In this document: one piece after another, positions 4,368 through 39,000 of the stretch
Numbering within the stretch: position 1 is the stretch's first letter
How the letters are laid out: each line of letters starts with the position of its first letter
From: Vicugna vicugna
Taxonomy: Eukaryota
NCBI GenBank assembly: GCA_013265495.1
Contig: MU058868.1
Coordinates: forward strand, 248,001-312,000
DNA: 64,000 nt
Direction: 5' to 3'
The notes under the pieces: generated by a model
Seen by the model: only the letters and a program-made list of their open reading frames with translations
Told to the model about the DNA's origin: nothing
Database searches by the model: none
Program-made: the position numbers and the translations under genes

Positions 4368-4491
4368 TTGGCGACCGACTGGATGACCTTGGAGGAGGTG
4401 TCCTTGATGTTGGTGAAGAGGCGCTCGGTGCCCCCCCGCAGAATGTCCAGGAGCCCGCCGTAGGGTTGGTCGTACTCTGCCACTGCCAGGC
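4368..4491 (-). CDS. GAK: GAK exon 11 (124 nt)
   Basis: LAVAEYDQPYGGLLDILRGGTERLFTNIKDTSSKVIQSVA; ttgcag acceptor, GTGAG donor. Confidence 0.95.
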
Positions 4492-7400
4492 CTGCAAGAG
4501 AGACAGGCTTTGGTGGGCGGGGCACGTCCAAAACCCATAGGCTGCACATCCTGCCACCACCGCCAGCACTCCAGGAGAACTGTCCAGCGCCCGGCACCCC
4601 AGCAAGGGAAGAAACTGGCCGCCATCAGCGGGCTGGAGCCTCTTGGCACACACAGCCCTCCGTCCCCATCTGCAGGATGTTCACTCAGCTCACTCCCAGA
4701 ATCTGCTGGACACCAGCACGGACTCCGGCACTGACAGCCGCATGCCACAGCCCAGCCAGGCAATCAGCTAGTCCCCAAGGTACGGGGACACCGGCAGACA
4801 CAGAGGCCACAGATGATCAGGGAGAGAAGGGTGTGGGAGCGGGGATATGTGGGTGGGTGGTCCCAGCCAGGCACAGAATGGCCACGTGAGCTACAGCTCA
4901 GTCTGCAGGCAGGGGCCTCCTGGCCACAGTCCAGATGTGACCAGAGTGGTGACACCCAAAGGTGGGCCCCGAAATGTCAGGGTCCCCAGGGGTGTGGTCT
5001 GCAGAGGTAGTGATGGTGCTAAAAGTCAGCGTGAAGAGAGGAGGCAGGGCTACACGCATACCCGTGCCACGCGGTCATCTGTGGCCTCTTCAGGGCCTCT
5101 ATGACCAGGCGGCAACAGTGGATGTCAGAGAACTGGGCGGAACCTGACACAAGGGGCCTTCGGGCTGTCAGTCAGCTCTGAGACATGGCTGATGAACCTT
5201 GTGTGTGTGTCCATGCTGGCCCTTCGCAAGGCAGTGACCAGTGGGCCCTGGCCGTGCTGGACCCACAACACATGAACACAGAGCCAGGATATGGGGCCAG
5301 GACTCAGGCTGGCCACCTGCCAAGATGACCCTCCCTGGAAAGGAAGAGCGGCAGGAGGACACGGGGGCTGGACTCACAGCCTGACAGCGAGGTGGCAACG
5401 GCCTGGGGGCACAGGGCAGAGAAGCGCGCCCTGGCACAGCTCTCAGAACCTCTGGGCAGGACGGCAGCACGAAGCTCCAGCCCAGGCCCTCCCAGGACGT
5501 GCTATGTTACACTGGCCCTGGGCAACCAGACCTGCCCTGGCACACGCCACACAATCAGTGCGCAAACCGCTCAGCTAAGGTGACATGCGTCATGAGGAAA
5601 GCCCACCAGCCCCACCTCCTCTCCCTGCCAGAGCCTGCACTTTCAGACCAGCAGAACTGGCCCCTTGGCCCCTGATCTGACCACACGGTTTCCTGGCACC
5701 CCTTATGAGACCCCCAGCCTCGTGCTCGCAGCTGGCCAGCCCTGGAAGGTGGATCCTCACCTGCCTGGGCAGGGGCCACACTTTCCAGTGGCTCGTGGGA
5801 GCCGTTGGCCAAATCAGCCACAGGGGTAGGTGGCAGTGCCCATGGTCACCCCAGACCTGCAAGTCAGGTACCAGGGCTCAGAGGACCAGGGCTGCCCCGA
5901 CCACATGGGGAGGGGCAGCTGGTGCTCGGGCTCTGCCCTCCTTCCCCATCCTAAACCACAGCCTGAAGTTCTGGGGTGCGCGGGAGCCATGGATGTGGGG
6001 CTGGCCCTAAGGACCCTGAAGGTGCAGCCTCGCACCATCAGGCCACAAGGCTCAAGAGCAGGACCTGGGGCCTGCCAATCGCAGGCGCGTGGGGTGCTCA
6101 CCTCCACTGTAGCTGCTGCTTGTGGGGCCCCCAGGAGGGGCCACGTTCCCATAGCCTCCACTCTGCTCCAGGAGCTGCAACGATCAAACACCAGTCAGGG
6201 CACAGTGCACACCGCTTCTCGCTGCGGAGAATCCTCAGACGCCAGCACAGGGCGCCATGCACTTCGGGCACGCGGCCCACATCAACCCTTCTCTCTCCAC
6301 CTGGTTTAAGACAAAATCATGAAGGAACCTCCCACAGGTTGGACAACAGGGCTGACACCTGGGACCAATCAGGCGCACGTTCCCGACATAGGCTGTCTCT
6401 GCTGTCAACAATGCCGCGTGGGGCCCGGTGGTCTGCACCCCAGGCCTGGCCGCAAGCAGGAACGCGGGAGACACAGCCCAAGGCAGGCGCTGGCGGCAGC
6501 CATGACATGAAAACCTTCTTTGGAGCCCCGGGTGTCAGCAGCAGTCTGGAAGCCGGGCTGTAGCCCCCACCCAGCCCACTGGAGTGTCAGCCGCAAACTC
6601 ACTCTGTCGTAAGCAGGCCACAGTTCCCGAGGCTACAATTTTTATCAGATATTCGGAAATCACTTTACGGTTTCCCGTAGGATTTTACGAAATGTTCTCA
6701 TCGGGTTTATGTTTTATCACGTTAAGCCCAAAAAGTGAGATGTATGTGTTACTGATTCTGTGGAGTATGATGAAATGCTGTCTTTCCTTGTGACCAGCAG
6801 GCAGACGTTAATGCTAACGCCCCCTGGGCTCTTAAAGAGAACAGGTTCGCCTGCGGGAGACACGTGTCTACCAGATCGACCGTCTCATTTCACACCAACT
6901 CCCACTTCCGTCTAGCTGTTTCATCAGCTCCTCAAAGGCACACACCTTCTCCCCGCACTGCGCCCCAGCCCCTCGTCCCGCCCTCTCCCTCCCACACACT
7001 CTTCATCCCCATGCCTCAGCCTTCTCCATGCTCCCACCCTTGGGCGCTGCCCACTACAGGTGCTTAATTTCTGCGCCGCAGGTCCCAGACCCTGGGGGTG
7101 CTCAGAGCAGGACACACTCAGGAGCCTGCTGACCAGCGGCCTGCATCCATCTATCGGCACCTCCGCCCGCTGCACACAGCAACCCCGAGCACATGTGCCG
7201 GCTGACCGCCCCAACTGCGCCCCCCGCACCACCACCTGACCCTCTGCTGAGCCCTGGGAGCACACACCCTCTGTAAGATGCCACGGGAGCCCCAGGCCCA
7301 CCCCCATGGTGCTCACTGCCCTCCTAGACCCGAGTCCCACCTGAGCCATGCCCACTTCGCCCCCTCTTCCTCACGTGACAGCTGCTGCCTGACGCGCCAG

Positions 7401-10400
7401 GACTGTCTCCACGTCCTGCCCTGGCCCTGCACCGGTGCCCACGGGGCGCAGAAACACCCTGCGCCCCGGGAGCCCCACCCCCGCTTTACTCCCGACTCCG
7501 GGGACCCCGTCCTCGGGGCTCCTGCCTGCCTGATGGCTGCGAGCCCCTCGAGGGCTGGGTCACCCAACGCTAGGGCAGCATGAAGACTGTGCAACCACCA
7601 GCAACACAGAGGGCCTACCTCAGTGATGGGTGCCTTGGGGTTCACGTTCCGGGCAGCCGCGATCTCCTGGAGCTGGTTCACCAGCTCGCTGATGGACAGA
7701 CGCTCCTCGGGGTTGACCTTGAGGGTGGCGCCTGTGGCAGAGACAGCGCATGCTTGTCCCCAGGCCACTGGAGCCGGGGTCCCGAGTGGGCGAGCAGCAT
7801 GGCTGGCTTTGCAGGGGCTATGGACCCCCGAGGCCCTGAGCTTTGCTTTCGTTACCGGTTTTACAAGCAAGCAGGTGTGATGGAACAAAATCACCAAAAC
7901 CAACCACTCGGGGCTGAGCAGGGCAGCTGCCTGGACCTGCCAGGAGGCATGCCCTGCAGGCCCTGCACACGACTTACGGATGAGGTCATGGAACACGGAG
8001 TAGCGTGTATCGCCGGCAGGGATGGAGTACTTCCCGTTGACTATGCGGAGCTTCGCTCCATCCTCGAAGGGGTGCTGCCGGAAGCACAGCAGGTACAGGA
8101 TGCAGCCCAGGGCCTGCAGGGAACAGGGCGAGGGGCGGTCACAGCCAGGCCCCCTGGCATGACCAAGGCTCCCCCTCGTCTGGCCGCGTCCACCCACGCC
8201 AGCCACTGCTCATCAAGGTCAGAGCAGTCAACAAACACCGAACTCTTGTTTTCTGATAAAAAAATCCTTTCGAAACGGAAAGCTCCCACGGTCATGTGTG
8301 GGGATCTGCGGGCCGGGCAACCACGAGGAGATGCCCGGCCGCGCTCCTCAGTGTTAAGAAGATGCAGGACAGGGCACACCCAGGGCAGGTTGGGGCTCCA
8401 CAGAACTGGCCCTGAACCCAGACGTGTCTTCTCCCGGCTTCTCCTATCCCAGCACCTGGCCACGGGGGATGCTGGAGGCACCGGAGCCCACCCTGCATCT
8501 CAGGCTGAGCAGCACATGCTGGGCCCAGACAGGCCAAGCCCGAAGTGCACGGTTCCAGGTCCACCTTTCACTGCCGTGTGTGCGCGTGCGCCCTCACCAG
8601 GGGCAGGCTGACGGCGTCCACTTGGAGCCAACCAGCTCACATCTTAGTCTCCATCTACTCCCAGGACGGGGACTCTCACGTTCACGGTGGGGCTGGCACT
8701 GGACATGGCCCCGTCGGGCCTAGACCATGAGCCCCGAGGTGCGGGGATTCAGGGTCACCTGTCCCTGCTCTTAGGGACACTGGGGAGGCTGCAAGACCCC
8801 CAGACGGGGAGGGGAAGCACTGTGTGCTCAGCACTGTGCTCCCCAAGCTCTGTGCTCTGACGCTGAACAGAGGCGGAGCAGACATCACCCTCACCCCACG
8901 TTGGCATTGCTGGGACATGTCCCAGGAGAGGGGCAGGGAAAGGTTGCCCCAGCGTCCGGCCCAGCCTCTCTGAGATCTCTTCCCAAGGCATTGGGCTTAG
9001 CCCTCGCTTTGGCTACGCCCAGGTCAGCTTAAGCTGCAAGGCCGCTTGGGATGTCTGGCATCTGGCCCTGTGGCCAGTGGCTTTGTGACCCTCCAGCCCC
9101 CTGAGAGGCTCCAACCAGGAGAGCAGACATTCTTGGGCCAGGACTTCTGCCCACACTGCCTCGCGCTGACCCCCAACCCAGCTCCTAGCCAGCTAGGCTC
9201 CGCCAACAGCAGTCACAAGTGCCACTAAAAAAGACTAAGGAAAAGGAGGAGGAAAAGAAAGGAGGAAGCCAAGGGGACAGCAGATGGAGGCTGCACCCCA
9301 GGGCCTCACGCCAGCCCTCCCCCGCGCAGGGCTGCCCCGGCTCCGCGGGCGAGCAGCCTCACCCAGACGTCCTGTTTCTCGCCGATCGGGAAGTTGGAGT
9401 ACAAGTCCACAATCTCCGGTGTCCGGTACATGGGGGTCGTGTTCCTGGTGATCTGAAGGGAGGACACAGACACGTCAAAGGGAAAGCCACGTGCAAGCAA
9501 CACCAGTTACGCAGCACCGCGGTCCCGCGCCAGTCCGGAGACCAGGCCCAGGGTGGCACGGTGAGCCAGGCGTGCAAGCCGGCTCGGCGCCTGTGAAGGC
9601 AGCGGTGTCCTTGAAGGAGCTTCCCAACAAGCCCCTCTCGACAGAGAAACCCCTGACGGAAACGCACGGAAGCCAAACCCGCCTGCTGCCGCAGGGCTTC
9701 CATGGAACGCCCGCCACCCACGCCTGCAGGACGCCCAGCCACGACCAAGCGCGCCTGACAGACGGCAGACACACTGGCCCAGGCAGAGGAAGGGGACAGG
9801 CCCGGGCGAGCAGGGGCCACTGCTCCCCACGGCAACATGCGCTTTGCAAGAGAAAGCACGCGGGATGCCAGCCCCTCGCCGACACGTGCCTGCATGGACA
9901 GAGGTGTACAAGAGCCCAGAGCAGCCCACCACAACCGGCCCCCGCTGGGCAGGGCAGGCTCCCGTGAGCACCAGGAGCACGCGGGCGACACACCTCCACT
10001 GAGCAGCTGTACGTATGGCCCGAACCTTTCAACCCAGCGATCACGCTTCCAGGATCGCGCCCTGAACACACGTCCTGACACGCAGGAAACTGTCCTCTGC
10101 AGCGGTGATGCTGCACACAGCCGACGTCCCAGACGGTGCCACACGGAGACGCGTGCACACGAAGGGACAAAGACGGTCCCACTCAACTCAGCACTGACTC
10201 AGAAGAGAGAAAGCAGACAGAAGGCACGAGAGCGGACACATCTGCCTGCTCCTCAGGAGAAGGAAACTCGGAAGGTGAAGCAGGACGCAGCGAGGGCGAC
10301 TGGGGGACATGGGCAGGGGATGCGGGCCAGGCTCTGCCTGCATATCAGTTCTTCGGGGAACCCGAAACCGCTCGCAAGATAGAGTCTGTTAACTTGAAAA

Positions 10401-13400
10401 TAAGATAAAAGATACAAGATAAATAAACCCAGATGTGTTTCGGTCGAGCAGCCTAACAGACCCACCCTGGGTCTGGGCCGCACACGAGGCCGTGAAAAGA
10501 ACCACAGGCAAACCCTGAGCTCTTCTGAGAGGTTTGGTTTTCCTAGCGACCCTGGAGCTCCCAGCTCCAGCACAGGCTGCAGCGGGGCCAGGCTCCCGCT
10601 GGGACGGACATGCACGCAGGGTGGGGCGGGGGGTCAGGCATGAGTGTTCCTGAGGGCAGGGGATCTCCGCGCCATTCACGCACAGGCCCTGCCCCCACAC
10701 AGAGGGCAGCGCTCCTGCAGGATCAGGGACGACGAGGTGGGCCAGGTAGGTGCATCCTGCCGCTGCAGAAAAGAGGTAAACACTCCAAAGCGACGATGTC
10801 AAGGAATACAGGAACCAGCACGAAGCACACCCACACATTTCAGCACCAAAATAACCACTGAGCCGCAGAGGCCCGAGCAACGAAGAACCATATCCACCAG
10901 GCCCCGCGAACAACAGGCAAGGCGCAGGGTTCCGGTCCCTGGGCACGGCAGGCGTGGAGCAGCCGTGGTGGTCACGCAGCCGCAGAGCAAGACACTACAC
11001 CTTGGCCTCGAGGTCAGAGTGACCAGTCCCTGATACGCGGTGCACTCGATGGTGGGGGTCTGTTCAGGGGACACGACTCAGAGCCCCGCGAGGTGATCAC
11101 AAAACCAGGTCTTCCTGGGCCCCAGCCCGGCCCCAGCATGCCCGGCCAAGGCCTCCTTTCACCCCCATCCCTGCCAGCCAACCTGAGGAGAACGCGGTTT
11201 GCAGCACTGAGACGTGGGCACTTTGCTGGGACCGACTTTCCTATAAATGCTTCCGACAGGGCAGGTCCCGAGGGACAGACAGACAGAGCAAGCACAGGCT
11301 CGCACCCCAGCCTCCGGGAACAGGGCACCGCCTATAGCAGAATCACTCGTCTCCGCACTCCTTTTCGGAACATGTCTTCCCCGGGACCCCTGCCCTCTCC
11401 GCTCATTGCTGTTTTTCTGTCTCACATGGTTTTGACTGTGCAGTTTCTGCGGCCGTTTACCGAAGTCCAAGTTAGCAGCAGGAGGGTGCAGTGGCGAGTG
11501 TGTGGACAGCGCCCACCCTCCCGGACGATCCCGACACCAGGGTGTGTCTGCTCCCACTCAGTGCTGCTTTCCACGCACACGTGCTCCGAGCACACCCTCC
11601 AAACCTCCTTTGGGGTCACCTGTGGGAGCTGCCAAATCTCCTTGAAGTTATATTTTTTAATGATTTATTTTAAACGAAAGTTCTGGAGACGGATGGTGGG
11701 ACAGTTGCACAAGGATGTGAACGTACTTAACGCCAGTGAACTGCAAGCTTAAAAATGGTTAAGACAGTAAATTTTATGTTATGTGCTTTACTACAACAAA
11801 AAAAGGTGCACAAAAAAAAAAAAAGCCATAGGACACTCAGAGGCAAGTCTGGGATGAGAACAGTGATGGAGACACAGGGTTTGGTGTCCCGGTAGCCCGC
11901 CAGCCCGGCCAGCCCAGCAACCCTGCTCACCTCCTCCTCCACGAGGGCCCGCCGCTGGGCACTCCAGCTGTAGTCGGGGTAGTGGGATATGGTCGTGGCA
12001 CTGCCAAAGTCACACAGCTTAATGGTCCCCTGGTTACTGAGTAGTAAGTTTTCAACCTGCAAAATTCCAGAAGACAGTCTTCGTGAGCTTGGGGAGCAAG
12101 CTGGACCGTGGAAAAACACCCAGGGCTCCAGCACAGGGCAGGGTGCCCCGAGGGGAGGGGCTCAGAGGGTAGAGTAGCCGGCGTTTTCCTGGGCAAACAG
12201 GAAACCTCTCTGATCAAAACTGGTATATGTACCTTTAAAATGAGGACTTCAGAAAAATAAAAGCTAAAACCAACCACAAATCAAAGAAAGATAAACTAAT
12301 AAGGTGGTATCTACAATGAAAGCCTTCATAAACCTCAGAAGGCGAAAAAAACACCACTTGAAATCATCAAGTGCACCCATAACAGGAAGGTATCCAACAA
12401 CAGACACACAGAAGACCCCCTGTTCAGAAATGAGCTGTGATGAATTTAAAAATCCACAATGAAGAGGGAGCGAGACTGTATTCCTAAGAGGAAAGACACA
12501 AGCCCGCCCCAACGCCCTGGAAGCCAGCCCAGCACTGTGGCCTCCGCAGGCCCACACTCAGAATGGCTTTTATTTTTTAAACAGAAAAAAAAAGAAGAAT
12601 CAAAAGACCAGTGTTTCAAGACACAGTGGGGGAGCAGTTCTGCTGACCCGGCCACGCCTGCTCAACCAGACAGCCTGTGGCTGCTTCTGAGCCGCTCGGT
12701 CGGGAGATTTGAGGCAACTTCAGCCAGATTCCCAAAACTTTTCTGGGTGGGAGCTGACAAACTGATCCAAAATTTACAGGCAGACCTCATGTTCCTGAGC
12801 CTTTCATATACAGAGGTCGCAGCAGCCCAGCCTCGAGAGTCTGTCGGCACCGTTTCTCCAACAGCACCACGCACTTTCTGTCTCCACGTCACGCTCTGGA
12901 AAATCTTGCAATATTTCAAACTTTGTCACCATCACTGTACTTGTTGTGTTGTCTGTGACCAGTGACCTGTGATGTCACTGCTGCGACTCACTGAAGGCGC
13001 GGACGACGGTCAGCACTTTTAGCAATACGGTATCTTCTCACTGAAGTACAGACGCTGTTCCTTAGACACAGGCCATTGCCCACTAACAAAGCACAGCACC
13101 ATGTGAACGCAACTTCCAGAGGCACCGGGAGACAGACGCCACGGGACTCACTCTGCTGCTGCATCTGCTTTACTGGTCTGGATAGAATGCGCAGCATCAC
13201 CAAGATGCCTGCGTGTGGAGACACCAAGGGCCAAAAAGAGCCACACGGTCCCAGAGAACCAGACGTAAGCCCGCCGTGAAGCCATGGTACAGAAGGCAGA
13301 GAGAGGCTGCCTAGGACCCCCAACGATGCACCCAGGAAGACCTGCCCCCCACGCGCGAAGGAACGACCGAGTGAGAATGCAGCGGGGGGAGCGAGGTCTG

Positions 13401-16400
13401 CCCTCATGCACTGAGCGGGCTGCTGCTGCCGTGAGGGGCACAGCACTGCCCGAGGGGACACCCACATGCCCACGAGCAGGACGAGACAGGACGAGCCGTG
13501 TTCTCAGAAGAAAGCCCACTGAATCCACGCATCAGCTGAGGCTGACCACCAAGGGCCAGCCAAGCACGGGCACAGGGCGACCAAGTGCTGCGGTGGGAAC
13601 ATTCCCAGCCACGCCCCACAGCATCCAGGGGCCACGCCCGGGACACGGGCGTCCTGAGGCTCAGAGCAGCGCTGCTGGCTACAGGCACAGAGTGGGGAGC
13701 CACCAGGTGCAGCGCACTGGCCCTGCCAAGCATGGACGACCCAAAGTGGATAAGCCTCAAAGTCACAACCCTGAGCAACAGCTTGACACATGAGACCCTG
13801 CACTGTGGGTCCCTCGCGTGATGACCCCAAAGAGCAAAAGGCAAAAGGGCATGAGGAAGGAGCAGGGCACACAGCAAAAAGTAAAGCAAACAGCTGTCAC
13901 TAACAGCAAGAGGGACGTGGGGCCCCAGGGCTGACACTTGTGTCTAGAACATACGGATGCCAGTCCACAGACCGCGGCATCCGGGGGAGCCAGGCACGGC
14001 TGCAGAGCACGGAGGGGGCCAGCCTGGGGGAGCCCCGGCCCCCGTGTCCTGCCTGCCCTTCCAGAGCACCACCTGGGAGGCCTGGAGGGAGTCCCAGCAC
14101 TGGGCCGCCGCACACACGCAGCACCGAGGAGAGGAGTCAAACCCAGGCCAAGCTCACAAACACCGCGTCTTCACTAACGCCATCCTTCTAGTCTTTCACT
14201 TTCCTTTAAGGAGAAAAATACACACACACGCACACACGTGCACAGCACATGAAGCACAAGAGTCTCGATGGCACGAGGAAGCCACCAGCCACACGGCCGA
14301 GGGCAGAGAAGGCCTTCTCCCTCCAAGACCACCGCCGCCCAGGTGTCCCTGACAGCCCTTCTGCAGGCCCGGGGCCTGGGAGGTGGCTCCCATCCCACAG
14401 GTTTCTGCAGCCAAGTTGACTTGTCACCTTACACCAGGCCCCTCGGGTCCAGGAACAAACAAGAAAGGCCAGATTCGTCCGAGGTTCACATCCATAGGAA
14501 GGCGCCATGCCCACGGACAGGGCTGTCAATGCCCATCTGACCCCTATTCAGCCACCAGGCCGTGGGGTGCGCTGTGCCTAAGAAGAGCCCACCACAGGGA
14601 AAACCCGGGGAGGGCAACCCGGGGAGGGCAACCCGGGGAGGGCTGGCCAGACTGCATCTGAGGTTGCACTGAGGGGTTTTAGTCCCGCTGAGGCCGCCGC
14701 GTGTTTCCGCTGCATTAGAAACATCCTTATTTGCATGAAAGCACCTGGAGAGAAACAGCATGTCTGGGGTCTGCTTTAAAATTCTTTAGCGGGGAGGACC
14801 AGGGGGCCGCGGCCACCCTGAGACGTGGTCAAAGCTGGGGCACTAGCTTCGTGGACACTGGATAATTAATAAAACGAGGCCAGAAACCGGGAGAAGATAT
14901 TTGCAACACGTGTAACTTAAAAATGACTGTTGTAAGGATGTACAAAATCAAACCAACAGACAATAAAACGGGAAAACTAGGCAGGTAAGCGAAGATCGAA
15001 GGCACCAAAGAGCATAAACAGCAGAAACGCTCGACTTCTTCATTAATCAGGAAAAGGCAAAATCACTACTCAGATGCCCCCAACCAGGCGGCAAAATGAC
15101 AAAGGGCAGCTCCCCACACGGACAAAGCCCCAGGCCTAGGACGTGTGGCATCACTGCAGGAGGCAGCGTCTGTGGTGAAACGCAGGCCCTGGCACTAGGC
15201 AGCAGGGCGGGCCAGGCTGGGCCCCAGTGGGGTGACGGAAGGGTGGTGGCCAGCGCAGCACAGAAGAGCAGTCACCTTCCTCCTGGTTCCACGCCAGGGC
15301 CCAGTCCTACCCTAGCATCAGGGCCCCCGCCCGCGCCCACACCGGCACCCGCAGGAGAGGAGCACCCCGTGGAGGCCTGCTGGGCATGGGGAGGGGGCCC
15401 TGTGTGCTCCAGCCAAGTGGGAGGACTCGGGGAGGGCTCTGCTCACGGCTAGCAGGCCCGACAGGTGCAGGGGCTGGGCGGGCATGGCGTGGAGGGAGGG
15501 CAGGGGGGCCGTACCTTGAGGTCTCTGTGGATGATGGGTGGCTTCTGCTTGTGCATGTGCTGCACCGCTCTGCATGTCTGATAAAATATCTTCAGAACAG
15601 TATCGCACGAGAGCGGACCTTTAGACTCAACTTTCTTTAAAAATTCCACCAGCTGCCCTACAAGAGACAATCACCAGGGAGCTGTGAGTGCTCCGCCCGC
15701 CTCGGGCATGCGCCCGCCAGCCGCACCCTCCTGAGCCCGCTGGGGGCTGTGCAGCCCCCACCAGGGCGCGGGCCAGCGCTGGGGCGCCCTGTGCGAACGC
15801 CTGCCTACCATCGGCACGCCCCTCCCTGCAGAGTCCACGCAACGTGGCAGCTACGTGGGAAAGGATGACAAACATGCCCAACTCTCCAAGTACCTCTAGG
15901 GAACAATCACTGCATCCTCTGCTAACTCTTAAATCAATGTAGCACCTCCGTCATCACACCCTCCACGTGCACACAGATGCGGAACGGAGCGTGCAGGGAG
16001 AGCACGACCAGACAGCGAGGCTCTGGGCACCAGGACGCTGTTCTCAGGGGCTCCCCACCTCAAGGCTGTGCCTCCCCATCTCTGTAGCCCAGGAACCCCG
16101 AGGCCTGCTGTAACCGGCCACAGCCCAGACCTTGAAGCCGGGCACCTCAGGTATAGGGTGGCCGGCCCCCTCCATGACTATGCATGGTCCCAGCCTCCAC
16201 AGGCTCCCACCACCCCCGGGCCCCGGACCCCCAACCCTGTTCTTGCCCTGGACGTCTCAAAGCATCTTCCTAGAGTCCAGCCTCTCCCCAGCCCCACGCT
16301 GCCCTCACCCTGGTCCAGGGCCCAGGCCACCTCGGCTCCCTTGCTCCCAAGGCCCACTTCACACACTAAGGGCCCGTGCCCGTCCTGCTCGATGCAGAGC

Positions 16401-19400
16401 CAGGGTCACCACACCTAAGGGCCCACGATCGGCACTCACTCGTTCTCTCCAACCTCACCTCCCATCATCCCCTGTGCTCATTCCCCTCGAGCCACAAGCC
16501 TCCTTTCTGTCCGTGCCTCAGGACCCTCACACCTGCAGCTCCTGGGCTCCCGAAGCTCCTGACCCGACCGTCGCCCTCCAGGGAGCCCTCTGCTCAGCCT
16601 GGCTGATGTGCACCCCTTTCCCCAACATGTGGAGCTGCCCGCCCTCCAACTCTGGACTTGGGTTGGGCTCTGTGCTGTGCCCTAGCCCTAATCCTCAGCG
16701 GGGCGGGGGCCCCAGGGGGACAGGGGTCCTAAGAGTAGGTGGGGCCCCCAGGATGTGGATGGAGCACAGGCCTCATGAGGTGTTGTTGAGGGTCTGGAGC
16801 AAGGGTGACAGACTAACTGCCAGGCTGGCTGGGGACGTGATGCGCTGGTGCAGGGCGGGGCACCGCAACGTCAGGGTTCACTGGCCTGACGTTCAACCAG
16901 AGTTAAGAGAGCTCTTTTTAAATTAATTCCATCAGTGGCAGAGCAGCCAGAGAGAGCACTGTGGAGGGCGAAGCCTTGGGGAATCAGGAGGGTGCAGGCT
17001 CCACGGAGCATACCCACGGTCGACTTCCAAAGACCTGCCACCTGTCAGGCACTACCACACCTGCTCTGCGAGCACCCTGAGGGTTCAGCCTGGGCCTCGC
17101 GCACCAGCCCAGGCAGGCGGTCCTGCCCACGCCACACGCAGTGGTGGGCTTCACGAGATCGCAGCATCAAGGATGCCCCTGACACACGTGGGCAACCAGG
17201 CCCCCCTCCTGGCGCCTCCTGCACCCCAGGCCCGCACGCACCTGCAGAAGGGCAGCCACAGCCTCTAAAACCGAACATCAAAGCCAAAGCATCCTGGATG
17301 GTGAACGGGGAACACAGCACACGAACCAGAGACACAAACAGCCGAAAACACAAAGACACACGTCCACTGCCAGCAGCAGAGCACAAGGCAGACGGGGACC
17401 CAGTGGGCAGGGCCTCCAAGGGGAACATGCTGCCCAACCACAGGAACGGGGGCAGCTCAGGGACCTCCCAGTGTGGGTCCTGCTGCACTGCAGACAGGGC
17501 CCAGCCCTGAGGGCCGAGGCAGCTGCCTAGCTCCCACAGGCCCAGCTCCCAGCCTTGCCTGACTATTTCCTGCTGCCCCAGAGCGCACGAGGGTGCCAGC
17601 GCTCACCCTTCCTCCCAGGGCCAGCTCTGCTCTCGCCCCCAGGGCGGGGACCCAGGGGAACTCTCCCCCCAGGGCTGGGACAGGCCATGGGCAGGGTGGG
17701 GGTGCAAGAGCTCCCGCCAGGCAGCTAGCCACGCTCTTCCACTAGGACCAGTGGGTCTCAGGAGCGAAGGTCCCGGGCGCACCCTGCTGTCGGGGCTCAG
17801 ACCTGCTGGAACCTGACCTTTGCAGAGCTCCATGAGCAGCAGGAACTCGGCCTGCCCCGTGTCCGACTCCTCTTTTCCTATTGATGCTGCAGAACAAAAC
17901 TGGACGATATTGGGGTGACCTGAAAGTTTTTTCTGTGGGGATCTTGTTAAAGGAGAAGGTATAAGCCTGCATGTTTGAGAACAAACATGTACACAATTCT
18001 ATAGTCAAAACACCGAATCCAAAGAGTGCACCATGGCAGGGTGTCAGAGCAGAAAGATGCAAGGGGGTGGGGGCAGCCAGGATGCAGGGGGTGTGAGCAG
18101 GAGAAGGACAGGCTAGGGTGAAGACCCCAGTGGGCTGGCCACACCCAGCCCCAGCCGAGCAAGGCAGCAGCACAGGGCGCGGCAGGGCTGAGGTGTGACG
18201 GTACACGCAGCCACTCAAGCCCAGCGAGGTGAGCACCCTCAGCCCAAGCGGCTGGCAGGCTCGCAGTGGACAGTGCTTCAGGACGGAAGAGAACTGATTC
18301 TGACAGCAAAGGGCAAAGCCCCAGTTTGGGGAGAACGTGTGCAGGAGTGGGGAGCAAGCAAGACGGGCCCTCTGTGCACGGACACCCAGGCCCCAAGCGC
18401 TCCAGCCAGGGTGAGACGTGAGACAGACCCCAGCCCTGAGCAGAATCAATATGGAGCCAGGCCTGGTGAGGGGCTGGGGGCACAGCCACTTGCCGGGTGC
18501 CGTGGGCCACATCAGGGAACGAGGGGCAGACATAGGGCAGAGGCACCGGTCGGCCCACCCCCAGGGCCTGTAGACCTCTTGTCAGGGACACCCACCTCCA
18601 CTCCCAAAGCTACAGACCCTCCCTGTTTATCACCCTGAGAGTGAAGAACAAGAAGAAAAGTCCCTTGTGCGAGACACGCCACAGGGAAGCCCAGTGAAAG
18701 CACATCGAGAAGGGTGCCGTCAGGAGCCGGGCGCGGGCCCCGCCACGCGACCAGGTCTGCGCTCAGTCCCCAGAAAGGATACCATGAAACAAACTTCCTG
18801 AATGATGGCTCTGTTCTTCTCCTCTTCGTCAGACAGTAATCTCTGTATCGGGAAAGAACACACGAGAGAAAATGAAAGATTTGCTCTTTCCATGCTGCAT
18901 CCAAGAGAACAAACACAACGCATCTAAGAGCTCACCCTGCCTAACTCACGTAGAAACTTGACAGAGTTTAAAGACCCTCGGAAATGGTCACGATCCAAGG
19001 ATGCAAGAAAAACTAAAAACAGGAGGGTTTTCTTCAAACAGGCTAGAGGGAAGGGAGGGGAGACGTGGGTCTGGCTCTGGACCGCACAGTCCAAGTACGC
19101 CCCCAGCTCAGCTGTGCACCAAGACCAGCCCTCGGCGAGTCTCAAGACAAACCAGCCTGTGCGCCCAGCACCCGACATGGGCCGGATGACCCCGCCGCCC
19201 ATTTACAGGTACACTGTGACACGTTGTTGCACATGAGTGGCTTTCAAACTCCTGGCATCTGTGGAGCCCTTATTTTGGCAGGATCAACACTGTGAGGTCA
19301 CCCTCCACCCTCCACTGGGTCCCCGCCCCAAAGCTGGAAGCCACAGCTTTAAAGTCCTCAGAACTGCTGGTGGCTTCACACTGAAATAACAAATAAGACA

Positions 19401-22400
19401 ACCAGACACAGACTGTAAGAAAGAAACATAAAATAAAGAAGGAACAAACCTCTGAAAATGTCACTTAGCGATTTCCTTTAAAACGAACTAAAACCACATA
19501 AAAATGCTGTCACCCTTTTTACCTTCAGTGCATACTCTCTGCCACTTCCCAGATCCTGAGCTTCATATACAAATGCAAACCCTCCTGAAAGTTAGAAAAA
19601 TACACGTGTCAGTTCAGTGCTGTGATTTTACTCAAAAATGAGCTTCAAAAATGTCTTTACTAAGTAAAATACAGGCTGGGCTTGTGGCCGCAGTTTGTTT
19701 TCTGCAACAGTAACAGCCCCAATTGGTGTAATATTGCCCTTTAAACATCTTGCTTTGAGGCAGGAAGGAAATGAACATAAGAACGAGATTAATGAGGGAA
19801 AAATCACCAAAACCAAAAGCAGTTCTCCAAAAACAAATCAATGACCAATATCACACATGCACATGGACGGAAGAATCCTTAGAGCGTTAATTCTAAATAA
19901 AATTCAGCGTTGGCAAATCAAAGCCAACAGCACACAGACACGCACAAAACATCACAACTTGGTGGAGTCAGTCTAACAGTGAAAATCAGTGTAATTCTGT
20001 TGATTCCATTTGCTTCGCTCTTCCTAGCTCCCTATAGTGGGGAATGACATCGTGAAACCCACAACTCTCAGCAAAGGCGGGAGAGAAGGTGAAGGGCAGC
20101 TCTGAGAGACGCACAGGGACCCCACGCTCCCTCTAAGATCAGGGCCAAGGCAAACGCTCAGCACCTTACTGGGAGTCCTGGCCAGGACAATCAGGCAAGA
20201 GAAGAAACAGAAGGAACCAGACTGAAAAGGAAGAAGAAAAAAGTTCTTCTTTGCAGGCAACGTGATTGCCTACGTAGACAACCTTGTACCCACCCCCCAG
20301 AAGTAGTAAATGAGTTCAGGAAGGTTGAGGGATGGCAGTCACACGTGAAAAGTCAACCCTAGGTCAGGCAAACACTTCTTAGATATGAAGACAAAAATAT
20401 GATCCATAAATGAAAAATACGATAAATGGACTTCTTCAAAGTGAAGAACTTCTGGTTTTTGAACTATACCATTGAGAGGGTGAAAAGATAAGCCCCTGGG
20501 TGTGGACTTTGCCAATCACACACCCAGTAATGGTCTTCTACCCACAAAATGTGAAGAAAGCTCAGTTCAACAACATTTTAATGGGCAAAATACATGAAAA
20601 GACACGTGGCCAAGATAAACAGCTGGCACACAGGCACGTGACAAAGCGCTCCACGTCCCTGCGCGTTGCGGGAAGGCACACTTACACCACAAGGGCCTGC
20701 TGCTCACCCCTCGTGCCGTGCACCCTGCTGACCCTGCTCGGGGGACACCGAATGGCACGATCAGTTTGGAAAACAGTCTGGCCTTCTTGACAAGTTAAGC
20801 ACACAGCCCCTCCACAGCCCAGTCATCACTGCCAGGTATTTCCCGGGGAAGAATGGAAGCACACACCCACACAAAGACCTGTACACGAGCGTTCACAGCA
20901 GCCTTGTGCGGAACTGCCCAAGCTGGAAACAACCCACCGTACGCCAGCAATGAGGCAGGAGCCAGCTGCCCCTACAGGGAGCACACTCACCCCCAGGTCA
21001 GACGGGTACCGCCAGCACATGGCACGGGACGCAAAGACAGCTGCTGGGAAGAAAGGGCCAGGAAGAAGTACACGTGCCCACACAGAAAGCCCCAGAACAC
21101 ACACACGATGTGCGGCGACAGAGGCTGGCCCGCAGCAGGCCAGGGGCCCACGGTGGGGGGGGAGGTGGGGCTGACGGCGGTGGGAGGGGGGTACTGCGCG
21201 GGCTCCAGATGGCTCCCACCCTGATCACAGCGGTGGCTCCGCTGATGCGCACTCCGCTGCACATGTTCAAAGTGTTCTGACACGTATGTGCCAAGTTCCT
21301 GTATGTCATTTTTATCTCAAGACAGACATGAGAAAATTTAAGTAATAAAAAAATCCACATGAAAAACAGATGAAAATCCATAAAATAGATAGTAGAAATA
21401 GGAAACAGATGGCTTCGCTGGTGAGTTCTATCAAGCACTGAAGCGAAGAAAGCACAACAATCTTTGCACAAAGTCTTTGCCAAGATAAGAGGAGAAAACA
21501 GTTCCCTGCCTATTTTCTGGGGCAGAGAAGACAATAAAGATACAATTACAGACCAAAATCACTCATCAGTGTGGAAATAAACGATCCTTGGAGAAGACCA
21601 GCAAAGTGATTCTGGTGACATGCAGTGAGGACAGAACGCTGTGACCACGTGGGCTCCACCCCAGGAGTGTTGGCAACACTGGCTCAACACTGAACAGCAA
21701 TCAGTGTGCACACACCATTAACCACCAGGGACGGAGGAGCCCGAGCAGACACAGAGGAACATCTGTCCGCGTGTAAAATCCACTCGCGATTTTTAAGTAG
21801 TGAAGTAAAAGCAAACGTTCGACAAACTCGGAATCAGAGGAAACTTCTTCAATCTGAGAAACAGCAACCACGGAAAGCCCACAGCTAACAGAAGACTTCC
21901 CGGTGTTTTCTCTCTAGGACCAAGAACCACACAGGGATGCCTGCTCTCAGCTCTAGTACGCTCGACTGGAGCCCCGTCAGCGCAAGGAGGCTAGAAAATC
22001 CAACAAGGAGCAGGAAGATCAGAAAGGAAGGACTAAAACAGTGCTTACTTACAGGCGATAGGCTGTAAAGCACACAACCTCCAGGACTCTACCGAAAGGC
22101 TCCAGGACTGAAAAGGGACCTTAGCAAGGTGACACAGTCCTGGGGACCCTTCTCTGGCCTCTCTCCCAGCTGCAGCCACACGGACACGGCTGCACTTCCT
22201 CAGACTCACCAAGCCCACGACCACCCCCACAGCCCCGCGGGGGCACCCCAGCCTGACTCACCCCTCCCCAGCGCGCCCCAGCACCTCCTGATACCTGGTG
22301 CTGCACTACACTCACTGGGATACCTGTCTGCCGTCTCTCCCACCAGGCTGTAGACACAGAAGGCAGAAACGCCACCCAGGTCGTTCACATTTGTGTTGCC

Positions 22401-28700: not shown

Positions 28701-29451
28701 TTCGGTACAGATAACAGCTGTTAGCTCAGCTCTCCGTAAGTTCCATGGACTCACAGACAGACGTTCGAGGCAAGGGGAACGCTCGGATGGTAAGACGGGA
28801 AAGCCTGGTTAAAGGACACTGCGCCGGCTGTCCAACGCTCCAGGAGAGCGGAACTGCAATCACCCACGCCCAAGTTCCCGGCACCTGAGGAGAGCCAGCC
28901 CTACCTCTGTCCAGAGGTCCAGTCGCGTCCCACTCCCCTACTACTGCCCTAGATGCGAGGGAAGGGCCGTGGCTTATACCCACCCAGCCCCACTGCCCGC
29001 CCCCAGACTCCAGCCTGCAGCCCTGCAGCACCCTTCCGCCCCGCCACCGCCTGCACTGTGGCCCCGCACTCACGCTCCCCGCCTGCCCAACGTCCTTCCC
29101 ACCGCCACAGCCCCTCCCCCAGGCGCGGTCGGCCCCACGCCTGCTGCTTCCACTCCCCTGCCCCAGCCTGACCCCAGGCCTCCGACAAGGAAGTGCCCAG
29201 CCCGACACCGGCCTCACCCTCAGCAGCCACCTCCCGGCCGGCCGTGACCCTCGGCCCCGCGGCGACCCTCCCCGCGACCGGCTCGCGCCCCCGGCCCCGG
29301 CCTCACCCTCGGCCAGGACGCGCCGCACCCGCAGCCGCAGCTCGCCCATCTCCACCGTCTGCCCCACGAAGTCAGTCTGGTCGCGGCCGGCAGCGCCACC
29401 CAGGGAGCCCGGGCCCGCCAGGAAGTCGAGCGCAGACTGCAGCAGCGACAT
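4368..29451 (-). CDS. GAK: Cyclin G-associated kinase (auxilin-2), 5' part: exons 1-11 (kinase domain and start of PTEN-like region); gene continues beyond window start
   Basis: join complement(29307-29451,19523-19584,18783-18842,17818-17932,15515-15657,11931-12056,9363-9452,7978-8113,7619-7731,6102-6174,4368-4491) = 1187 nt, open frame, all GT-AG. Starts MSLLQSALDFLAG. Kinase motifs AEGGFAFV, YALK, HRDLKVEN, DFG and TTPMYRTPE are present. Exon 12 was not found in 1-4367. Confidence 0.98.
6102..6174 (-). CDS. GAK: GAK exon 10 (73 nt)
   Basis: LLEQSGGYGNVAPPGGPTSSSYSG; ttgcag / GTGAG; phase 0 to 1 fits neighbouring exons. Confidence 0.9.
7619..7731 (-). CDS. GAK: GAK exon 9 (113 nt)
   Basis: ATLKVNPEERLSISELVNQLQEIAAARNVNPKAPITE; ccacag / GTAGG. 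Confidence 0.96.
7978..8113 (-). CDS. GAK: GAK exon 8 (136 nt)
   Basis: ALGCILYLLCFRQHPFEDGAKLRIVNGKYSIPAGDTRYSVFHDLI; ctgcag / GTAAG. Confidence 0.97.
9363..9452 (-). CDS. GAK: GAK exon 7 (90 nt)
   Basis: ITRNTTPMYRTPEIVDLYSNFPIGEKQDVW; ttcag / GTGAG. Confidence 0.97.
11680..11824 (+). mobile_element. L1 3' terminus with A-tail
   Basis: GATGGTGGGACAGTTGCACAAGGATGTGAACGTACTTAA...AAATGGTTAAGACAGTAAATTTTATGTTATGTG followed by A-runs. Confidence 0.7.
11931..12056 (-). CDS. GAK: GAK exon 6 (126 nt)
   Basis: VENLLLSNQGTIKLCDFGSATTISHYPDYSWSAQRRALVEEE; gcag / GTGAG. Confidence 0.97.
12230..12850 (+). mobile_element. Degenerate L1 ORF2 fragments
   Basis: GCTGACAAACTGATCCAAAATTTAC and similar segments. 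Confidence 0.5.
14597..14643 (+). repeat. 14-bp minisatellite AGGGCAACCCGGGG, about 3.3 units
   Basis: agggaaaacccgggg agggcaacccgggg agggcaacccgggg agggc. Confidence 0.85.
14850..15200 (+). mobile_element. Degenerate L1 (L1ME-like) fragment
   Basis: GGGAGAAGATATTTGCAACAC, CATTAATCAGGAAAAGGCAAATC. Confidence 0.55.
15515..15657 (-). CDS. GAK: GAK exon 5 (143 nt)
   Basis: QLVEFLKKVESKGPLSCDTVLKIFYQTCRAVQHMHKQKPPIIHRDLK; ttgtag / GTAC. Confidence 0.97.
17818..17932 (-). CDS. GAK: GAK exon 4 (115 nt), contains gatekeeper and hinge
   Basis: KKLSGHPNIVQFCSAASIGKEESDTGQAEFLLLMELCK; ccacag / GTCAG. Confidence 0.97.
18783..18842 (-). CDS. GAK: GAK exon 3 (60 nt)
   Basis: RLLSDEEEKNRAIIQEVCFM; atacag / GTATC. 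Confidence 0.96.
19523..19584 (-). CDS. GAK: GAK exon 2 (62 nt)
   Basis: GFAFVYEAQDLGSGREYALK; tttcag / GTAAA. Confidence 0.96.
22641..22698 (+). repeat. (GA)29 perfect microsatellite
   Basis: Counted directly. Confidence 0.95.
23590..23930 (+). mobile_element. MLT1-type MaLR solo LTR
   Basis: CATGTTGAAGCCCCAGCCCCCAGTGTG...GGGAGGTGATTAAGTT...GACTCCAAGCCTCCAGGAC...GCAGCCTGAGCAGATGAAGA. Confidence 0.7.
29307..29451 (-). CDS. GAK: GAK exon 1 coding part (145 nt)
   Basis: GCCGCC-ATG at 29451; MSLLQSALDFLAGPGSLGGAAGRDQTDFVGQTVEMGELRLRVRRVLAE; GTGAG donor at 29306. Confidence 0.97.
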
Positions 29452-34639: not shown

Positions 34640-35851
34640 CCTGTTTTCTTCCTTCGTCACCACGAGTCTTAGGACTTGTGTGTGACGCAGGTTACGTGCA
34701 GCTGACATGTTTTTGAACATGTATTGTGCCAGGCCCTGGGATGTATTTGCCCATAGTAAAGTACACATAACAAAATCTGCCATCTTAACCCTCTAAGCGC
34801 ACAGCTCAGGGGCATGAGTACTTTCACACCGCTGTGCGGCCGTCGCCACCACCCGTCCCCAGAACTCTTCATCCTACAAAACTGAAACTCTGTTCCTGCT
34901 GAGCAGTAACTCCCTCCTCCCCACCAGCCCCGCCAGCCGCCATTCTACTTTCTGTCTGCAAGGCTGACTCCTCTAGGGACCTCGTGTAAGTGGACTCACA
35001 CAGTATTTGTCCTTCTGTGGCTGGCTTATTCCACTCTGCATAGTGTCCTCGGGTTCATCCATCTTGTAACAGGATAATTTCTTTCCTTTTTAAGGGAGTT
35101 CAATTAACATTCTGTTGTAGATGTATTTGCCACATTTTGTTTAGATGTTCACCCATAGATGGACACTTGGGTCATCCACCTTTTGGCTACTGAGACCCGG
35201 GCCACATTTTTAGTTAATTTTTGGATGTGGTGTAAGATACTCTCCAAATTCAGTCTTTGGTATGTTGATATCCAGTTGTCCCAGCAACATTTGTTGAAAA
35301 GAATTCTTTCTCCACCGAATGGTCTTGACACCCTTAACGCAAATCAGTTGACCACAAACGTAGAGGTTTACTTCCGGACTCTGATTTCTCCACTGGCCTG
35401 TCCGTCTGTCTTTATGCTGGTACCACACTGACTTGACTAGCATGGCTTTGCACTAAGTTCTGAAATTGGGAAGTGCAAGTCCTCACCTTTGTTTTCCGTT
35501 TTCAAGATTGTTTTGGCTACTCTTTAAATAGCCAAGGGTTCCTTAAATTTCCATATGAGTTTTAAGGTCAGCTTGTAAACTCCTACAGGGAAGGCAGTTG
35601 GAAGTTTGATAGGGACTGAGCTGAGCCTGTAGCTCATTCGTGACAATGCTAAGTTTCTTAATCCACGAGCAAGGGCTGTCTTTCCCCTTATTGGGGTCTT
35701 TAATCTCTTTAGTAACTTTTTGTACTTCTTTGTTAAACTGTGTTCCTAAGTATTTTGATGCTATTGTAAATGTAATTGTCATCTTAAGCTTATTGTCAGA
35801 TTTGTTATTGCTAGTTCAGAGATGTGTTGTTGAGTTTTGTATATTGCTCTT
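34640..35851 (-). mobile_element. L1 (L1MB-like) 3' end and ORF2 fragment, antisense to TMEM175
   Basis: CACATAACAAAATCTGCCATCTTAACC, CAGCAACATTTGTTGAAAAGAA and TTTTGATGCTATTGTAAATG are typical antisense L1 segments. Confidence 0.75.
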
Positions 35852-35883
35852 GCTCAGACCTGTGCTTCCTCCCAGGCCCCACC

Positions 35884-36036
35884 ATGTCCAGGCCCCAGAG
35901 CCCAGAGCCGGCCCTGAATGTGCAGGGAGCCTCCTCCATAGGCCCAGGGGATGAGGACGCTGCCGACGGGACCCAGCACTCACACCGCATGCTCAGCTTC
36001 AGTGACGCACTGTTGTCCATCATTGCCACTGTGATG
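35884..36036 (+). CDS. TMEM175: TMEM175 exon 2 coding part (153 nt)
   Basis: CCACC-ATG; MSRPQSPEPALNVQGASSIGPGDEDAADGTQHSHRMLSFSDALLSIIATVM; donor GTCCGT. Confidence 0.96.
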
Positions 36037-39000
36037 GTCCGTGTGGGCCCCGCCCAGACCCCAGCCTGGGTCCCCACCGCCTCCTGAGCTCCCCAGGCCC
36101 CAGGCAGCCAAGGGGGTGGGAGGAGCAGCCCAGGGCTGGCTCAGGTCCCCAACACCATGGCATCCAAAAAGCAGTCAGTGCCCAGCCTGAGAGCTGTCCC
36201 TCGCATCATTTTGTGTCTTGTTCCCGTAGATCCTGCCTGTGACCCACACGAACATCTCCCCGGAACAGGTACTTGGGGGCAGTCTGCAGCACCTGGCATG
36301 TGGGTGAGGGTCCAGAGGGCTCACAGTCCATGAGCTGGAGGTGGGGCTCTGTGCGGGCGCTCCTGGCTGGGACCAGGGGCCAGGCCGACTGACACTTCCC
36401 CCAGCGATGCTGGTCAGCCTGACCCTAGCCTGCAGACAAAGGTGTGCCCTCGGCTGAACCCTGAGGAAGCTTGAGGAGGGAAGGGGTGCTGATGGCTGGT
36501 GTGGGACCTGTGCCACCTGGAGTCTCTGCCAGTCACTCCTGGAGTGTCACTCAGAGTGGGTGCTCGGGGAGCAGAGGGCGGCCTGCCTGCCTGACCAGCG
36601 GGCCCAGTGGCCGGCAGCCTCAGGAGATGCTCCCACCTGGGCCTGCGTGATAAACGGACACTTGTGGTTTTGCCATGGAGGCAAGTGGCAAACCAGGTTT
36701 TTTAAAGCAGAGTTTCTATTTATAGCCAACTTGGAGTATTTCCGTTTTATAAGTAAGATGGTGATTAAGGTAGCACCTTAGAAGCCTGACATGGTTATGG
36801 AAGTCCTCCAGAAGCCCCTGGGCATGCGTGTGCAGGTGTGGCTCCCTGGGCCTCCTCTCCTGAGTGAGTGTCACCTCAAGGCACCTGGGTGCACAGCGCT
36901 GGGTCCCGTATGCATGGCCCCGGTCTGGCTCTGGTCCGACCAGCACATTCAGCCTGGAGGCCACTGGGGTTCATGGGAGTGTGGGGTTTGGCCTTTACAC
37001 CTGTGGGAAGGTGACGACGCTGCTTCTCATGTGCTTGGGATGCGAACTGAATGGAAATGCAGGTCGAGCCAGATGTTGGCAGCCGGCCCCCGGCATAATA
37101 AGTAAAGGGCCCTGTGCAGCTCCCTCTGCTCCAGGGCCCCTCGAAGGGGCCTGGTGCTGAGTGCTGGCCGAGCTCAGGAAAGCCGTGTCCCCCCAAGGGG
37201 CCATGGTACTCACCTGGCTGCGCTGGAACCTTCTGGGGACCTTGGTGCCACCAGTTTCAGAATGGGGTTGTGGGTGTGTGCACGTGAGATGCCAGGAGGT
37301 GACACGGGGACATACATGAGGCTAGATCTCCTCACCTCTCTACGGTCAGGGTCATGTTCTTGGAGGTCATGAGTTCTGCTGAGAAGTCATCCCTCTCTCT
37401 GCTGACTAGTTCTCGAGAGCTCTGAACAGAAGGGCCCGCACAGCGGTTGGGTGCCTCCTTCAGAGAAGGTGTTGCCAGGACATGACAGGAGAGTCCTGAA
37501 GGCCACAGGACCCACCGGTGAGGCAAGGAGTGGCTGCTCATGTGGGTGCAGAGAACCAGCAAGAATGGGAAAGGCACCAGCGCCACACTTGGAGGTCTCA
37601 CTGAGGAAGCCCAGCCTACCGCCCCACCCAGCACCCTGCGCCAGGCGACACTTCTCCTGGAGGACTGTTACCTGGCAATGCTGTAGCTCCCGTGGCAGCA
37701 CGGGCCTTGCTGCCACAGGACCCTGCCATGGTCCTGGAGTGGCTCGAAGGAACCTCTCTGCCCGGGAGCTGGCATTCTGGGGGATCCGCCCAGGACCCTG
37801 GAATGTGCATCTGTGACCAGGGCCTGGACAGAGGCCGAGCCTCTCAGCGCTTCTCCCGCCCTGGGGTCTCAGTGCCCTGTGGCGGGGCTGCTGGGTGCAT
37901 GCAGTGAAGCTGTCTCTGACGTGATGCTCTTCTGTTCCAGGAGTTTGACAAGAGCATACAGAAGCTTCTAGCAACCAGAATTGCCGTCTACCTGATGACA
38001 TTCCTCATTGTGACCGTGGCCTGGGCAGCACACACGCGGTATGGGGCCGGGCCAGGGCCTCTCCCCAGGCTGACGCCCACATTTTTGGCGGCTCGGCGTG
38101 TGTGCCCAGTATGGCCTGGGCCTGCTGAGGGCCGGGGGCAGCACGTGTGCCCTGGGCCCTGAGCCACCCACTCTCGGGGTGGGCCGCGGCTGAGCACCCA
38201 GGAGGGGGTGTTAGTGGGCCCCTCCCCCTCACCGCAGGTTCGTGCTCAGGCCTCTGTGTTCCCATCTGCTCACAACCATGACGGGGCTTCCCACCCCAGG
38301 CCCAGGACGTGAAGGGCGGTGGCGTGTGAACACAGGCCCACGCTGCCCGTGTCGTCTGGGCCGGGCACGGCGCTGCCGCCTGCCTGAGCCACTGTGCAAC
38401 CTCGCGTTTGCAGGCCCCTCCATCCTGGTCCAGACTCTGGGGAGGAGAGTGGAGGCCTCAGGACACAGGAGTCGGGCCTGAGCTTCCTCTTTGGGGGGAA
38501 GAGGTTCCTTAGGACCCAGGGGACGTCTGAGCCCCAGGCCAGGGCAGGGAGAACCCCAGGGATGGGCTCTGGGTGGGAGGGGAGGTGCTGACATCTGGGT
38601 TACATATGTTCTCTGACTGGGGGTGCTGAGGGTGCCGGAAGCCCAGGAGCCCGTGAGGCACTGGCGTGTCCCTTAAAAGTGTCTCTTAACATTTTATGTC
38701 ATGTACTTGCTTTCAGCAAAGTGATTTTCTGGTGGGGACAAGTGATCCTCTAAAGGCTTTGAGGGGCCTTTTCTCTTCTGCCTCCCTTGTTCACGGAAAG
38801 CAAGGAGGCCCAAGGGCTGGCGAAAGCCAGGTGGGCCACAGCTGCCCTGTCTAGTCCTGCTGGTAGCTGTACAGGCTGCTGGCACAGTAGCGTGGACAGG
38901 GCCACAGGTGCCTCGCGTGGGGGCGCGCTCAGCAGAGGCCACACCCGAGAGCTTGAGGCCTAGCTTCCAGAAGTGGCACAGGTCCACCCTGGGGCCTTGT

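Follow-up and report, generated by a model that had tools for sequence, protein, structure and literature searches.

The window analysed here, 64,000 nucleotides of Vicugna vicugna contig MU058868.1 (assembly GCA_013265495.1, positions 248,001 to 312,000 of the forward strand), carries on its minus strand the gene of the kinase GAK (cyclin-G-associated kinase, NAK family). At residue 123, the gatekeeper of the inhibitor pocket, this gene encodes Met where human GAK has Thr. The same Met was found in all 12 named artiodactyls that were retrieved, while Thr prevails in the other mammals surveyed. It is likely that an ancient Thr to Met change on the artiodactyl stem has been kept since, and it would give these animals a GAK with an AAK1-like pocket and a probably lower affinity for inhibitors that reach into the back pocket. 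All positions below are those of the window.

Met123 in the window and in other artiodactyls

Read on the minus strand, positions 17833-17831 give ATG, inside CTG CTG CTC ATG GAG CTC TGC AAA G, after which the intron opens with gtcagg. The exon concerned, exon 4, translates as KKLSGHPNIVQFCSAASIGKEESDTGQAEFLLLMELCK. Exons 1-3 hold 267 nucleotides or 89 codons, so that exon 4 opens at Lys90 and the ATG is codon 123. An earlier note on this DNA had proposed both this codon and its numbering, the latter from exon lengths of 145+62+60. The codon is confirmed by the strand reading and by alignment with human GAK, and the numbering by the sum of the exon lengths. Exon 4 is identical to human GAK at 37 of 38 residues (PDB 4o38, 5y7z, 4c57), Thr123 to Met being the sole difference, and among solved structures it matches human GAK chains only (E 3.5e-19), and none of AAK1, BIKE or STK16. 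The artiodactyl kinase N-lobe scores 343 bits against GAK but only about 111 bits against AAK1, which like BIKE is a separate gene. These comparisons identify the gene as GAK and not AAK1. The gene model was built from stop-free segments with GAK motifs, after which every exon boundary was read directly. Spliced together, exons 1-9 give an open kinase region of 330 codons in which all internal boundaries are AG...GT and the kinase core is intact (Lys69 in ALK, the HRDLK catalytic loop and DFG).

The distribution of Met123 was followed with one exon-4 search and three homologue searches. The exon-4 query (38 residues) was compared with the whole library and returned mostly short open reading frame fragments, the only full-length tetrapod representative being a toad protein. 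The GAK orthologues found in this way extend across animals and include 46 with Thr and four with Met. The Met cases belong to Asterias sea stars, the freshwater mussel Potamilus and a mammal-like reading frame on a Logan contig. The homologue searches were seeded by the toad, Tasmanian devil and orang-utan proteins respectively. The first listed 120 clusters, mostly from amphibians, birds and reptiles together with the Tasmanian devil, of which 118 have Thr and one has Ser. The second, in which birds outranked most placentals, shows Thr throughout in marsupials, platypus, five afrotherians, two primates and a Myotis bat. The third alone reached artiodactyls, at the foot of its 120 rows; the placental clusters among the matches listed comprise 89 with Thr, 8 with Met and 16 isoforms without exon 4. 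The Thr clusters span primates, rodents, rabbit, colugo, carnivores, pangolin, horse, rhinoceroses, eight bats and afrotherians. The Met clusters are those of gray whale (two isoforms), right whale, blue whale (two entries), minke whale and yak, plus one bat transcript. Within the yak cluster, every member with exon 4 has Met: banteng, water buffalo, fallow deer, wapiti, white-tailed deer and muntjac. The named artiodactyls thus comprise 8 ruminants (Bos mutus including B. m. grunniens, B. javanicus, Bubalus, Dama, Cervus, Odocoileus and Muntiacus) and 4 baleen whales (Eschrichtius, Eubalaena and two Balaenoptera).

Outside mammals, the single Ser at position 123 belongs to the frog Gastrophryne carolinensis (P0107), and the GAK-like proteins with a Met gatekeeper are those of Asterias rubens and A. 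amurensis (P0020 and P0197) and Potamilus streckersoni (P0027).

The survey indicates that Thr123 is ancestral and Met123 derived, because Thr is present in a monotreme, marsupials, afrotherians, euarchontoglires, carnivores, perissodactyls, pangolin, bats, birds, reptiles and amphibians. The claim of the earlier note that Met123 is special to "this lineage" therefore falls, since 12 of 12 named artiodactyls share it and the window is sister to cattle and whale. The related check, whether Met123 is widespread in mammals, is answered in the affirmative for a whole order and in the negative for mammals in general.

The kinase-domain protein is too conserved to place the window and introns were used instead. 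The GAK loci of banteng, giant panda, gray whale, plains zebra, Molossus and Hipposideros were compared with the 30.5 kilobases (kb) of GAK in the window, of which 20 kb could be aligned with whale, 10 kb with zebra and about 7 kb each with banteng and panda. The resulting intron-only alignment is anchored on the window and comprises 5,087 columns for which at least four of the six other species have a base. Its outgroup consists of the two bats, all the species compared being within Laurasiatheria. In the tree, the window is sister to banteng plus whale (support 100/99) and a grouping with panda and zebra is rejected (approximately unbiased test, p-AU 3e-5). Restricting the alignment to columns present in all species leaves 383-994 columns, too few for rooting. 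A candidate signal that panda is closer than Bos, seen in raw tblastn identity, was an artefact of a spurious alignment piece. On the intron evidence, the window genome appears as an artiodactyl that branches outside ruminants and whales, which leaves a camelid or a suid; its short branch suits a camelid.

A second change marks the same group. At position 35, just ahead of the first kinase strand, the window and 8 of 8 artiodactyls have Met and 33 of 33 other mammals have Leu (42 mammals compared), corresponding to CTG to ATG at the DNA level. Exon 4 is otherwise almost invariant. Cattle, buffalo, deer and baleen whales have the same Met123, the same ATG and the same L35M as the window. They differ from it by Arg127, where the window keeps Lys127, and by the lineage-specific Gly259, Gly290 and Met295, which the window lacks. 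Since ruminants and whales carry Met123 and the window is sister to both, the simplest history suggested by these sequences is one Thr to Met change on the stem of Artiodactyla.

Among the same 42 mammals, Val246, Gly281 and Ser307 of GAK are private to the lineage of the window, and its Asp74 recurs in just two other species. The four codons (74, 246, 281 and 307) lie in exons 3, 7, 8 and 9 and are all outside the inhibitor pocket.

The gatekeeper and the back pocket

EGFR T790M and ABL T315I are gatekeeper Thr-to-Met/Ile mutations that confer drug resistance. Met123 of GAK resembles T790M in structural position and residue change, and GAK shares gefitinib and erlotinib as ligands with EGFR. 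It differs in being germline, tens of millions of years old and not drug-selected: it is present under four organism labels of public sequencing runs and in 12 other artiodactyl species, which is not the pattern of a somatic change arising under drug selection.

Residue 123 is the last of strand beta5, before the hinge Glu-x-Cys. In GAK it is the gatekeeper, and the smaller variants T123A and T123G lose much activity (PMC6312924). The polar Thr123 of GAK corresponds to Met126 in AAK1 and Met130 in BIKE (BMP2K), and it is credited for the distinctive back pocket of GAK and for a high-energy water site used by SGC-GAK-1 (bioRxiv 10.1101/2020.03.06.976563). In the gefitinib co-crystal, Thr123 belongs to a water-mediated hydrogen-bond network that holds the drug (PMC6129943). 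For 4-anilinoquinolines, a further report gives a more than 50,000-fold selectivity for GAK over other NAK kinases (10.1101/117630). What the earlier note had stated about this residue is thus borne out: its role as gatekeeper (PMC6312924), the contrast between Thr in human GAK and Met in AAK1 and BMP2K (10.1101/2020.03.06.976563, and our alignment with AAK1), and the involvement of Thr123 in gefitinib and 4-anilinoquinoline binding (10.1101/2020.03.06.976563; PMC6129943). In our alignment, Met123 of Bos GAK falls on the gatekeeper Met of AAK1 (LMELC against LMDFC).

The surroundings of Met123 are conserved. Twenty-one pocket, catalytic and spine positions were compared (46, 54, 67, 69, 85, 89, 101, 121, 123-129, 171, 173, 180 and 190-192), and the window differs from human at 123 only. 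The gefitinib contacts listed in PMC6129943, leaving aside 123 and with Leu180 outside this statement, are unchanged. Across the kinase region 306 of 330 residues are identical to orang-utan GAK. Relative to human and mouse GAK, catalytic, spine and inhibitor-contact residues checked are identical save the gatekeeper, and the remaining 23 substitutions, including L35M, lie outside the pocket. No pocket change co-varying with Met123 was seen in the mammal site table; Lys127 is replaced by Arg in the ruminants and whales.

The longer, non-polar side chain of Met would fill the small back pocket, or furrow, beside residue 123 and would remove the Thr hydroxyl from the water network. The back pocket of artiodactyl GAK would then be narrowed and similar to that of AAK1 and BIKE. 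Catalysis is expected to be kept, because a hydrophobic gatekeeper suits the NAK fold and the regulatory spine, and because Met has been retained for more than 50 million years and is the gatekeeper of the paralogues. Inhibitors that use the Thr123 pocket (gefitinib, erlotinib, SGC-GAK-1 and other 4-anilinoquinolines and 4-anilinoquinazolines) would bind more weakly. A narrowed back pocket and a lower sensitivity to anilinoquinazolines are plausible. Published pocket analyses of GAK and AAK1 lend indirect support to such a loss of inhibitor efficacy, and the inhibitor resistance and altered ATP affinity suggested in the earlier note may follow. We give roughly even chances to the stronger proposal that artiodactyl GAK may be at least 10-fold less sensitive to inhibitors of the Thr123 back pocket (gefitinib, erlotinib, SGC-GAK-1).

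Alternative readings of Met123

Several points weigh against an ancient stem change with pharmacological consequences. The sample consists of ruminants, mysticetes and the window, with pigs, named camelids, hippos and toothed whales outside it, so that "all artiodactyls" is an extrapolation from these three. The placement of the window depends on an alignment anchored on the window itself. Whether column 123 was included or removed, the tree of kinase-domain proteins did not place the window: neither a position with artiodactyls (p-AU 0.22) nor one with carnivores (p-AU 0.40) is rejected. As to the pocket, EGFR T790M works mainly through a raised affinity for ATP and not through steric exclusion, which makes the size of any effect of Met123 uncertain. 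AAK1 and BIKE also differ from GAK at other pocket residues, for example in having Phe or Tyr in the hinge in place of Leu125 (10.1101/2020.03.06.976563), and their insensitivity is therefore not attributable to Met alone. In the literature library searched, no paper combines "T123M" with "GAK".

The alternative that survives best accepts the substitution as real and ancient and takes it to be nearly neutral, with catalysis as in Thr123 enzymes and inhibitor affinities barely shifted. The recurrence of Thr to Met in unrelated lineages, unaccompanied by pocket changes, speaks for it and suggests that position 123 tolerates both residues easily. However, tetrapods otherwise retain Thr, as do 118 of the 119 clusters of the first survey, and Thr123 is directly involved, according to published structures and modelling, in the water network and back pocket that gefitinib and SGC-GAK-1 use. 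We regard near-neutrality as possible but rather unlikely.

Convergence, in which Met123 was gained independently in the lineage of the window and in the clade of ruminants and whales, is improbable. The change is certainly recurrent. A spliced bat transcript (L008, from Logan run SRR18679138; P0349), known from a single contig, has Met123 encoded by ATG at 483-485. Its protein is 94.9% identical over 1,299 residues to GAK of Molossus nigricans, in which the codon is ACG, and a CpG-type Thr to Met change fits this molossid-like case, independent of that in artiodactyls. With the sea stars and the mussel, the comparison indicates two or more Thr to Met changes at 123 in mammals and a further two or more in invertebrates. 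Convergence could also draw on the failure of the protein tree to unite the window with artiodactyls. Against it stand the identical codon in all carriers, the second unique change L35M in the same group and the well supported union of the window with Bos and whale in the intron tree; two changes are moreover less parsimonious than one. A further candidate for a distant second mammalian origin, P0002/L001, with introns about 66% identical to the window, proved to be ruminant: along the entire 4.5 kb of L001, identity to banteng is 85%.

At codon 123, the window, banteng, gray whale and ruminant contig L001 all read ATG, while panda and plains zebra have ACC, Molossus ACG and Hipposideros ACA. 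The third position being free to drift, the artiodactyl stem could have passed through an ACG codon that a CpG transition then converted. The ACG to ATG step put forward in the earlier note thus suits the bat, with its ACG relative, while for the stem the outgroup codons are mixed.

A substitution specific to the lineage of the window, presumably camelid, would make one lineage the bearer of a naturally drug-resistant GAK. This reading takes its appeal from the contrast between Met in the window and Thr in human, mouse and most mammals. It is very improbable, given the same ATG/Met in the twelve named ruminants and baleen whales, to which the window is a sister lineage; the genomic loci L002 and L004 argue against mis-annotated database proteins.

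The base itself was checked in public sequencing runs. Eighteen runs, which carry four organism labels, contain 99-100% of the words sampled from positions 17000-19000. Four of them (X1, X3, X7 and X10; word depth 6.5-29) were picked to span the four labels and four studies, and in each a single contig stretch spans all 2,001 bases, with 0 differences and 0 gaps. Assembled contigs drop rare variants, and these show presence in four samples rather than strict fixation. Because four independent runs are identical to the window, the ATG is not an assembly slip, and the doubt raised on this point in the earlier note is answered. A sequencing or assembly error, or a rare allele of the sequenced individual, can be dismissed in view of these identical contigs from four studies, the word content of the 18 runs and the presence of the same residue in far more distant relatives.

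Gene structure and significance

Table 1. Features located in the window.
Feature	Position	Strand	Description
GAK codon 123	17831..17833	-	ATG, Met at the gatekeeper (human Thr)
GAK exon 4	17818..17932	-	115 nucleotides, Lys90 to first base of Gly128; AG acceptor, GT donor
GAK exon 1, coding part	29307..29451	-	145 nucleotides; start codon 29451-29449
GAK exon 2	19523..19584	-	62 nucleotides; Gly-rich loop and Lys69
GAK exon 3	18783..18842	-	60 nucleotides
GAK exon 5	15515..15657	-	143 nucleotides; HRDLK at its end
GAK exon 6	11931..12056	-	126 nucleotides; DFG motif
GAK exon 7	9363..9452	-	90 nucleotides
GAK exon 8	7978..8113	-	136 nucleotides
GAK exon 9	7619..7731	-	113 nucleotides
Later GAK exon	4368..4495	-	residues 361-404 approximately (panda numbering)
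GAK codon 35	29347..29349	-	ATG, Met (CTG/Leu in 33 non-artiodactyl mammals)
TMEM175-like exon	35815..36084	+	FSD motif; identified by short motif only
TMEM175-like exon	44252..44422	+	FSD motif; identified by short motif only
DGKQ-like exon	49650..49952	-	GGDGT...PLGTG motif; identified by short motif only

The gene is a genuine, intron-containing GAK adjoining TMEM175 and DGKQ. It is the same gene as human and mouse GAK by exon structure and by synteny with these two neighbours, themselves recognized by motif, an arrangement which we take to be the gene order of human 4p16.3. In the window, GAK reaches residue 404 approximately and continues past the edge; the exon for residues 331-360 or so was not located. 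For the C-terminal part of GAK (PTEN-like/C2, clathrin-binding and J domains), full-length artiodactyl orthologues carry PF10409 and PF00226.

Two observations concern the exons and introns of the gene. Many predicted primate GAK isoforms join exon 1 straight to exon 5 (VLAEG/QLVEFL). They include P0283, P0299, P0301, P0305, P0306, P0315, P0328, P0329, P0341, P0344, P0363, P0373 and P0378 from primates including tarsier, and one is listed also for Tupaia (P0316). These isoforms lose the Gly-rich loop, Lys69 and the gatekeeper and, if real, would be kinase-dead. In intron 3, a 32-base stretch followed by a poly-C run (18463-18494) recurs with 2 differences in other contigs from three of the four runs and is a short dispersed repeat or low-complexity element.

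Met123 is already present, unremarked, in public protein predictions of cattle, deer and whales (RefSeq/UniProt). As it is not special to the window genome and these sequences are public, the present analysis is a comparative note and not a discovery. It should nevertheless be useful to those who apply GAK inhibitors to livestock or camelids, or who seek an inhibitor-resistant allele that is tolerated. EGFR drugs often hit GAK as an off-target, and GAK is also a candidate host target for broad-spectrum antivirals; its inhibitors owe their selectivity in large part to the pocket at Thr123, which is small and polar. T123M may serve as a drug-resistant control allele of natural origin. If the insensitivity were indeed at least 10-fold, T123M would offer target validation an inhibitor-resistant allele that is ready-made and validated by evolution, and the results of GAK-directed antivirals would not be transferable between human cells and those of livestock or camels. 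GAK appears to have functioned with Met123 for tens of millions of years, and the pharmacology established for human and mouse GAK may not apply to artiodactyl cells or animals.

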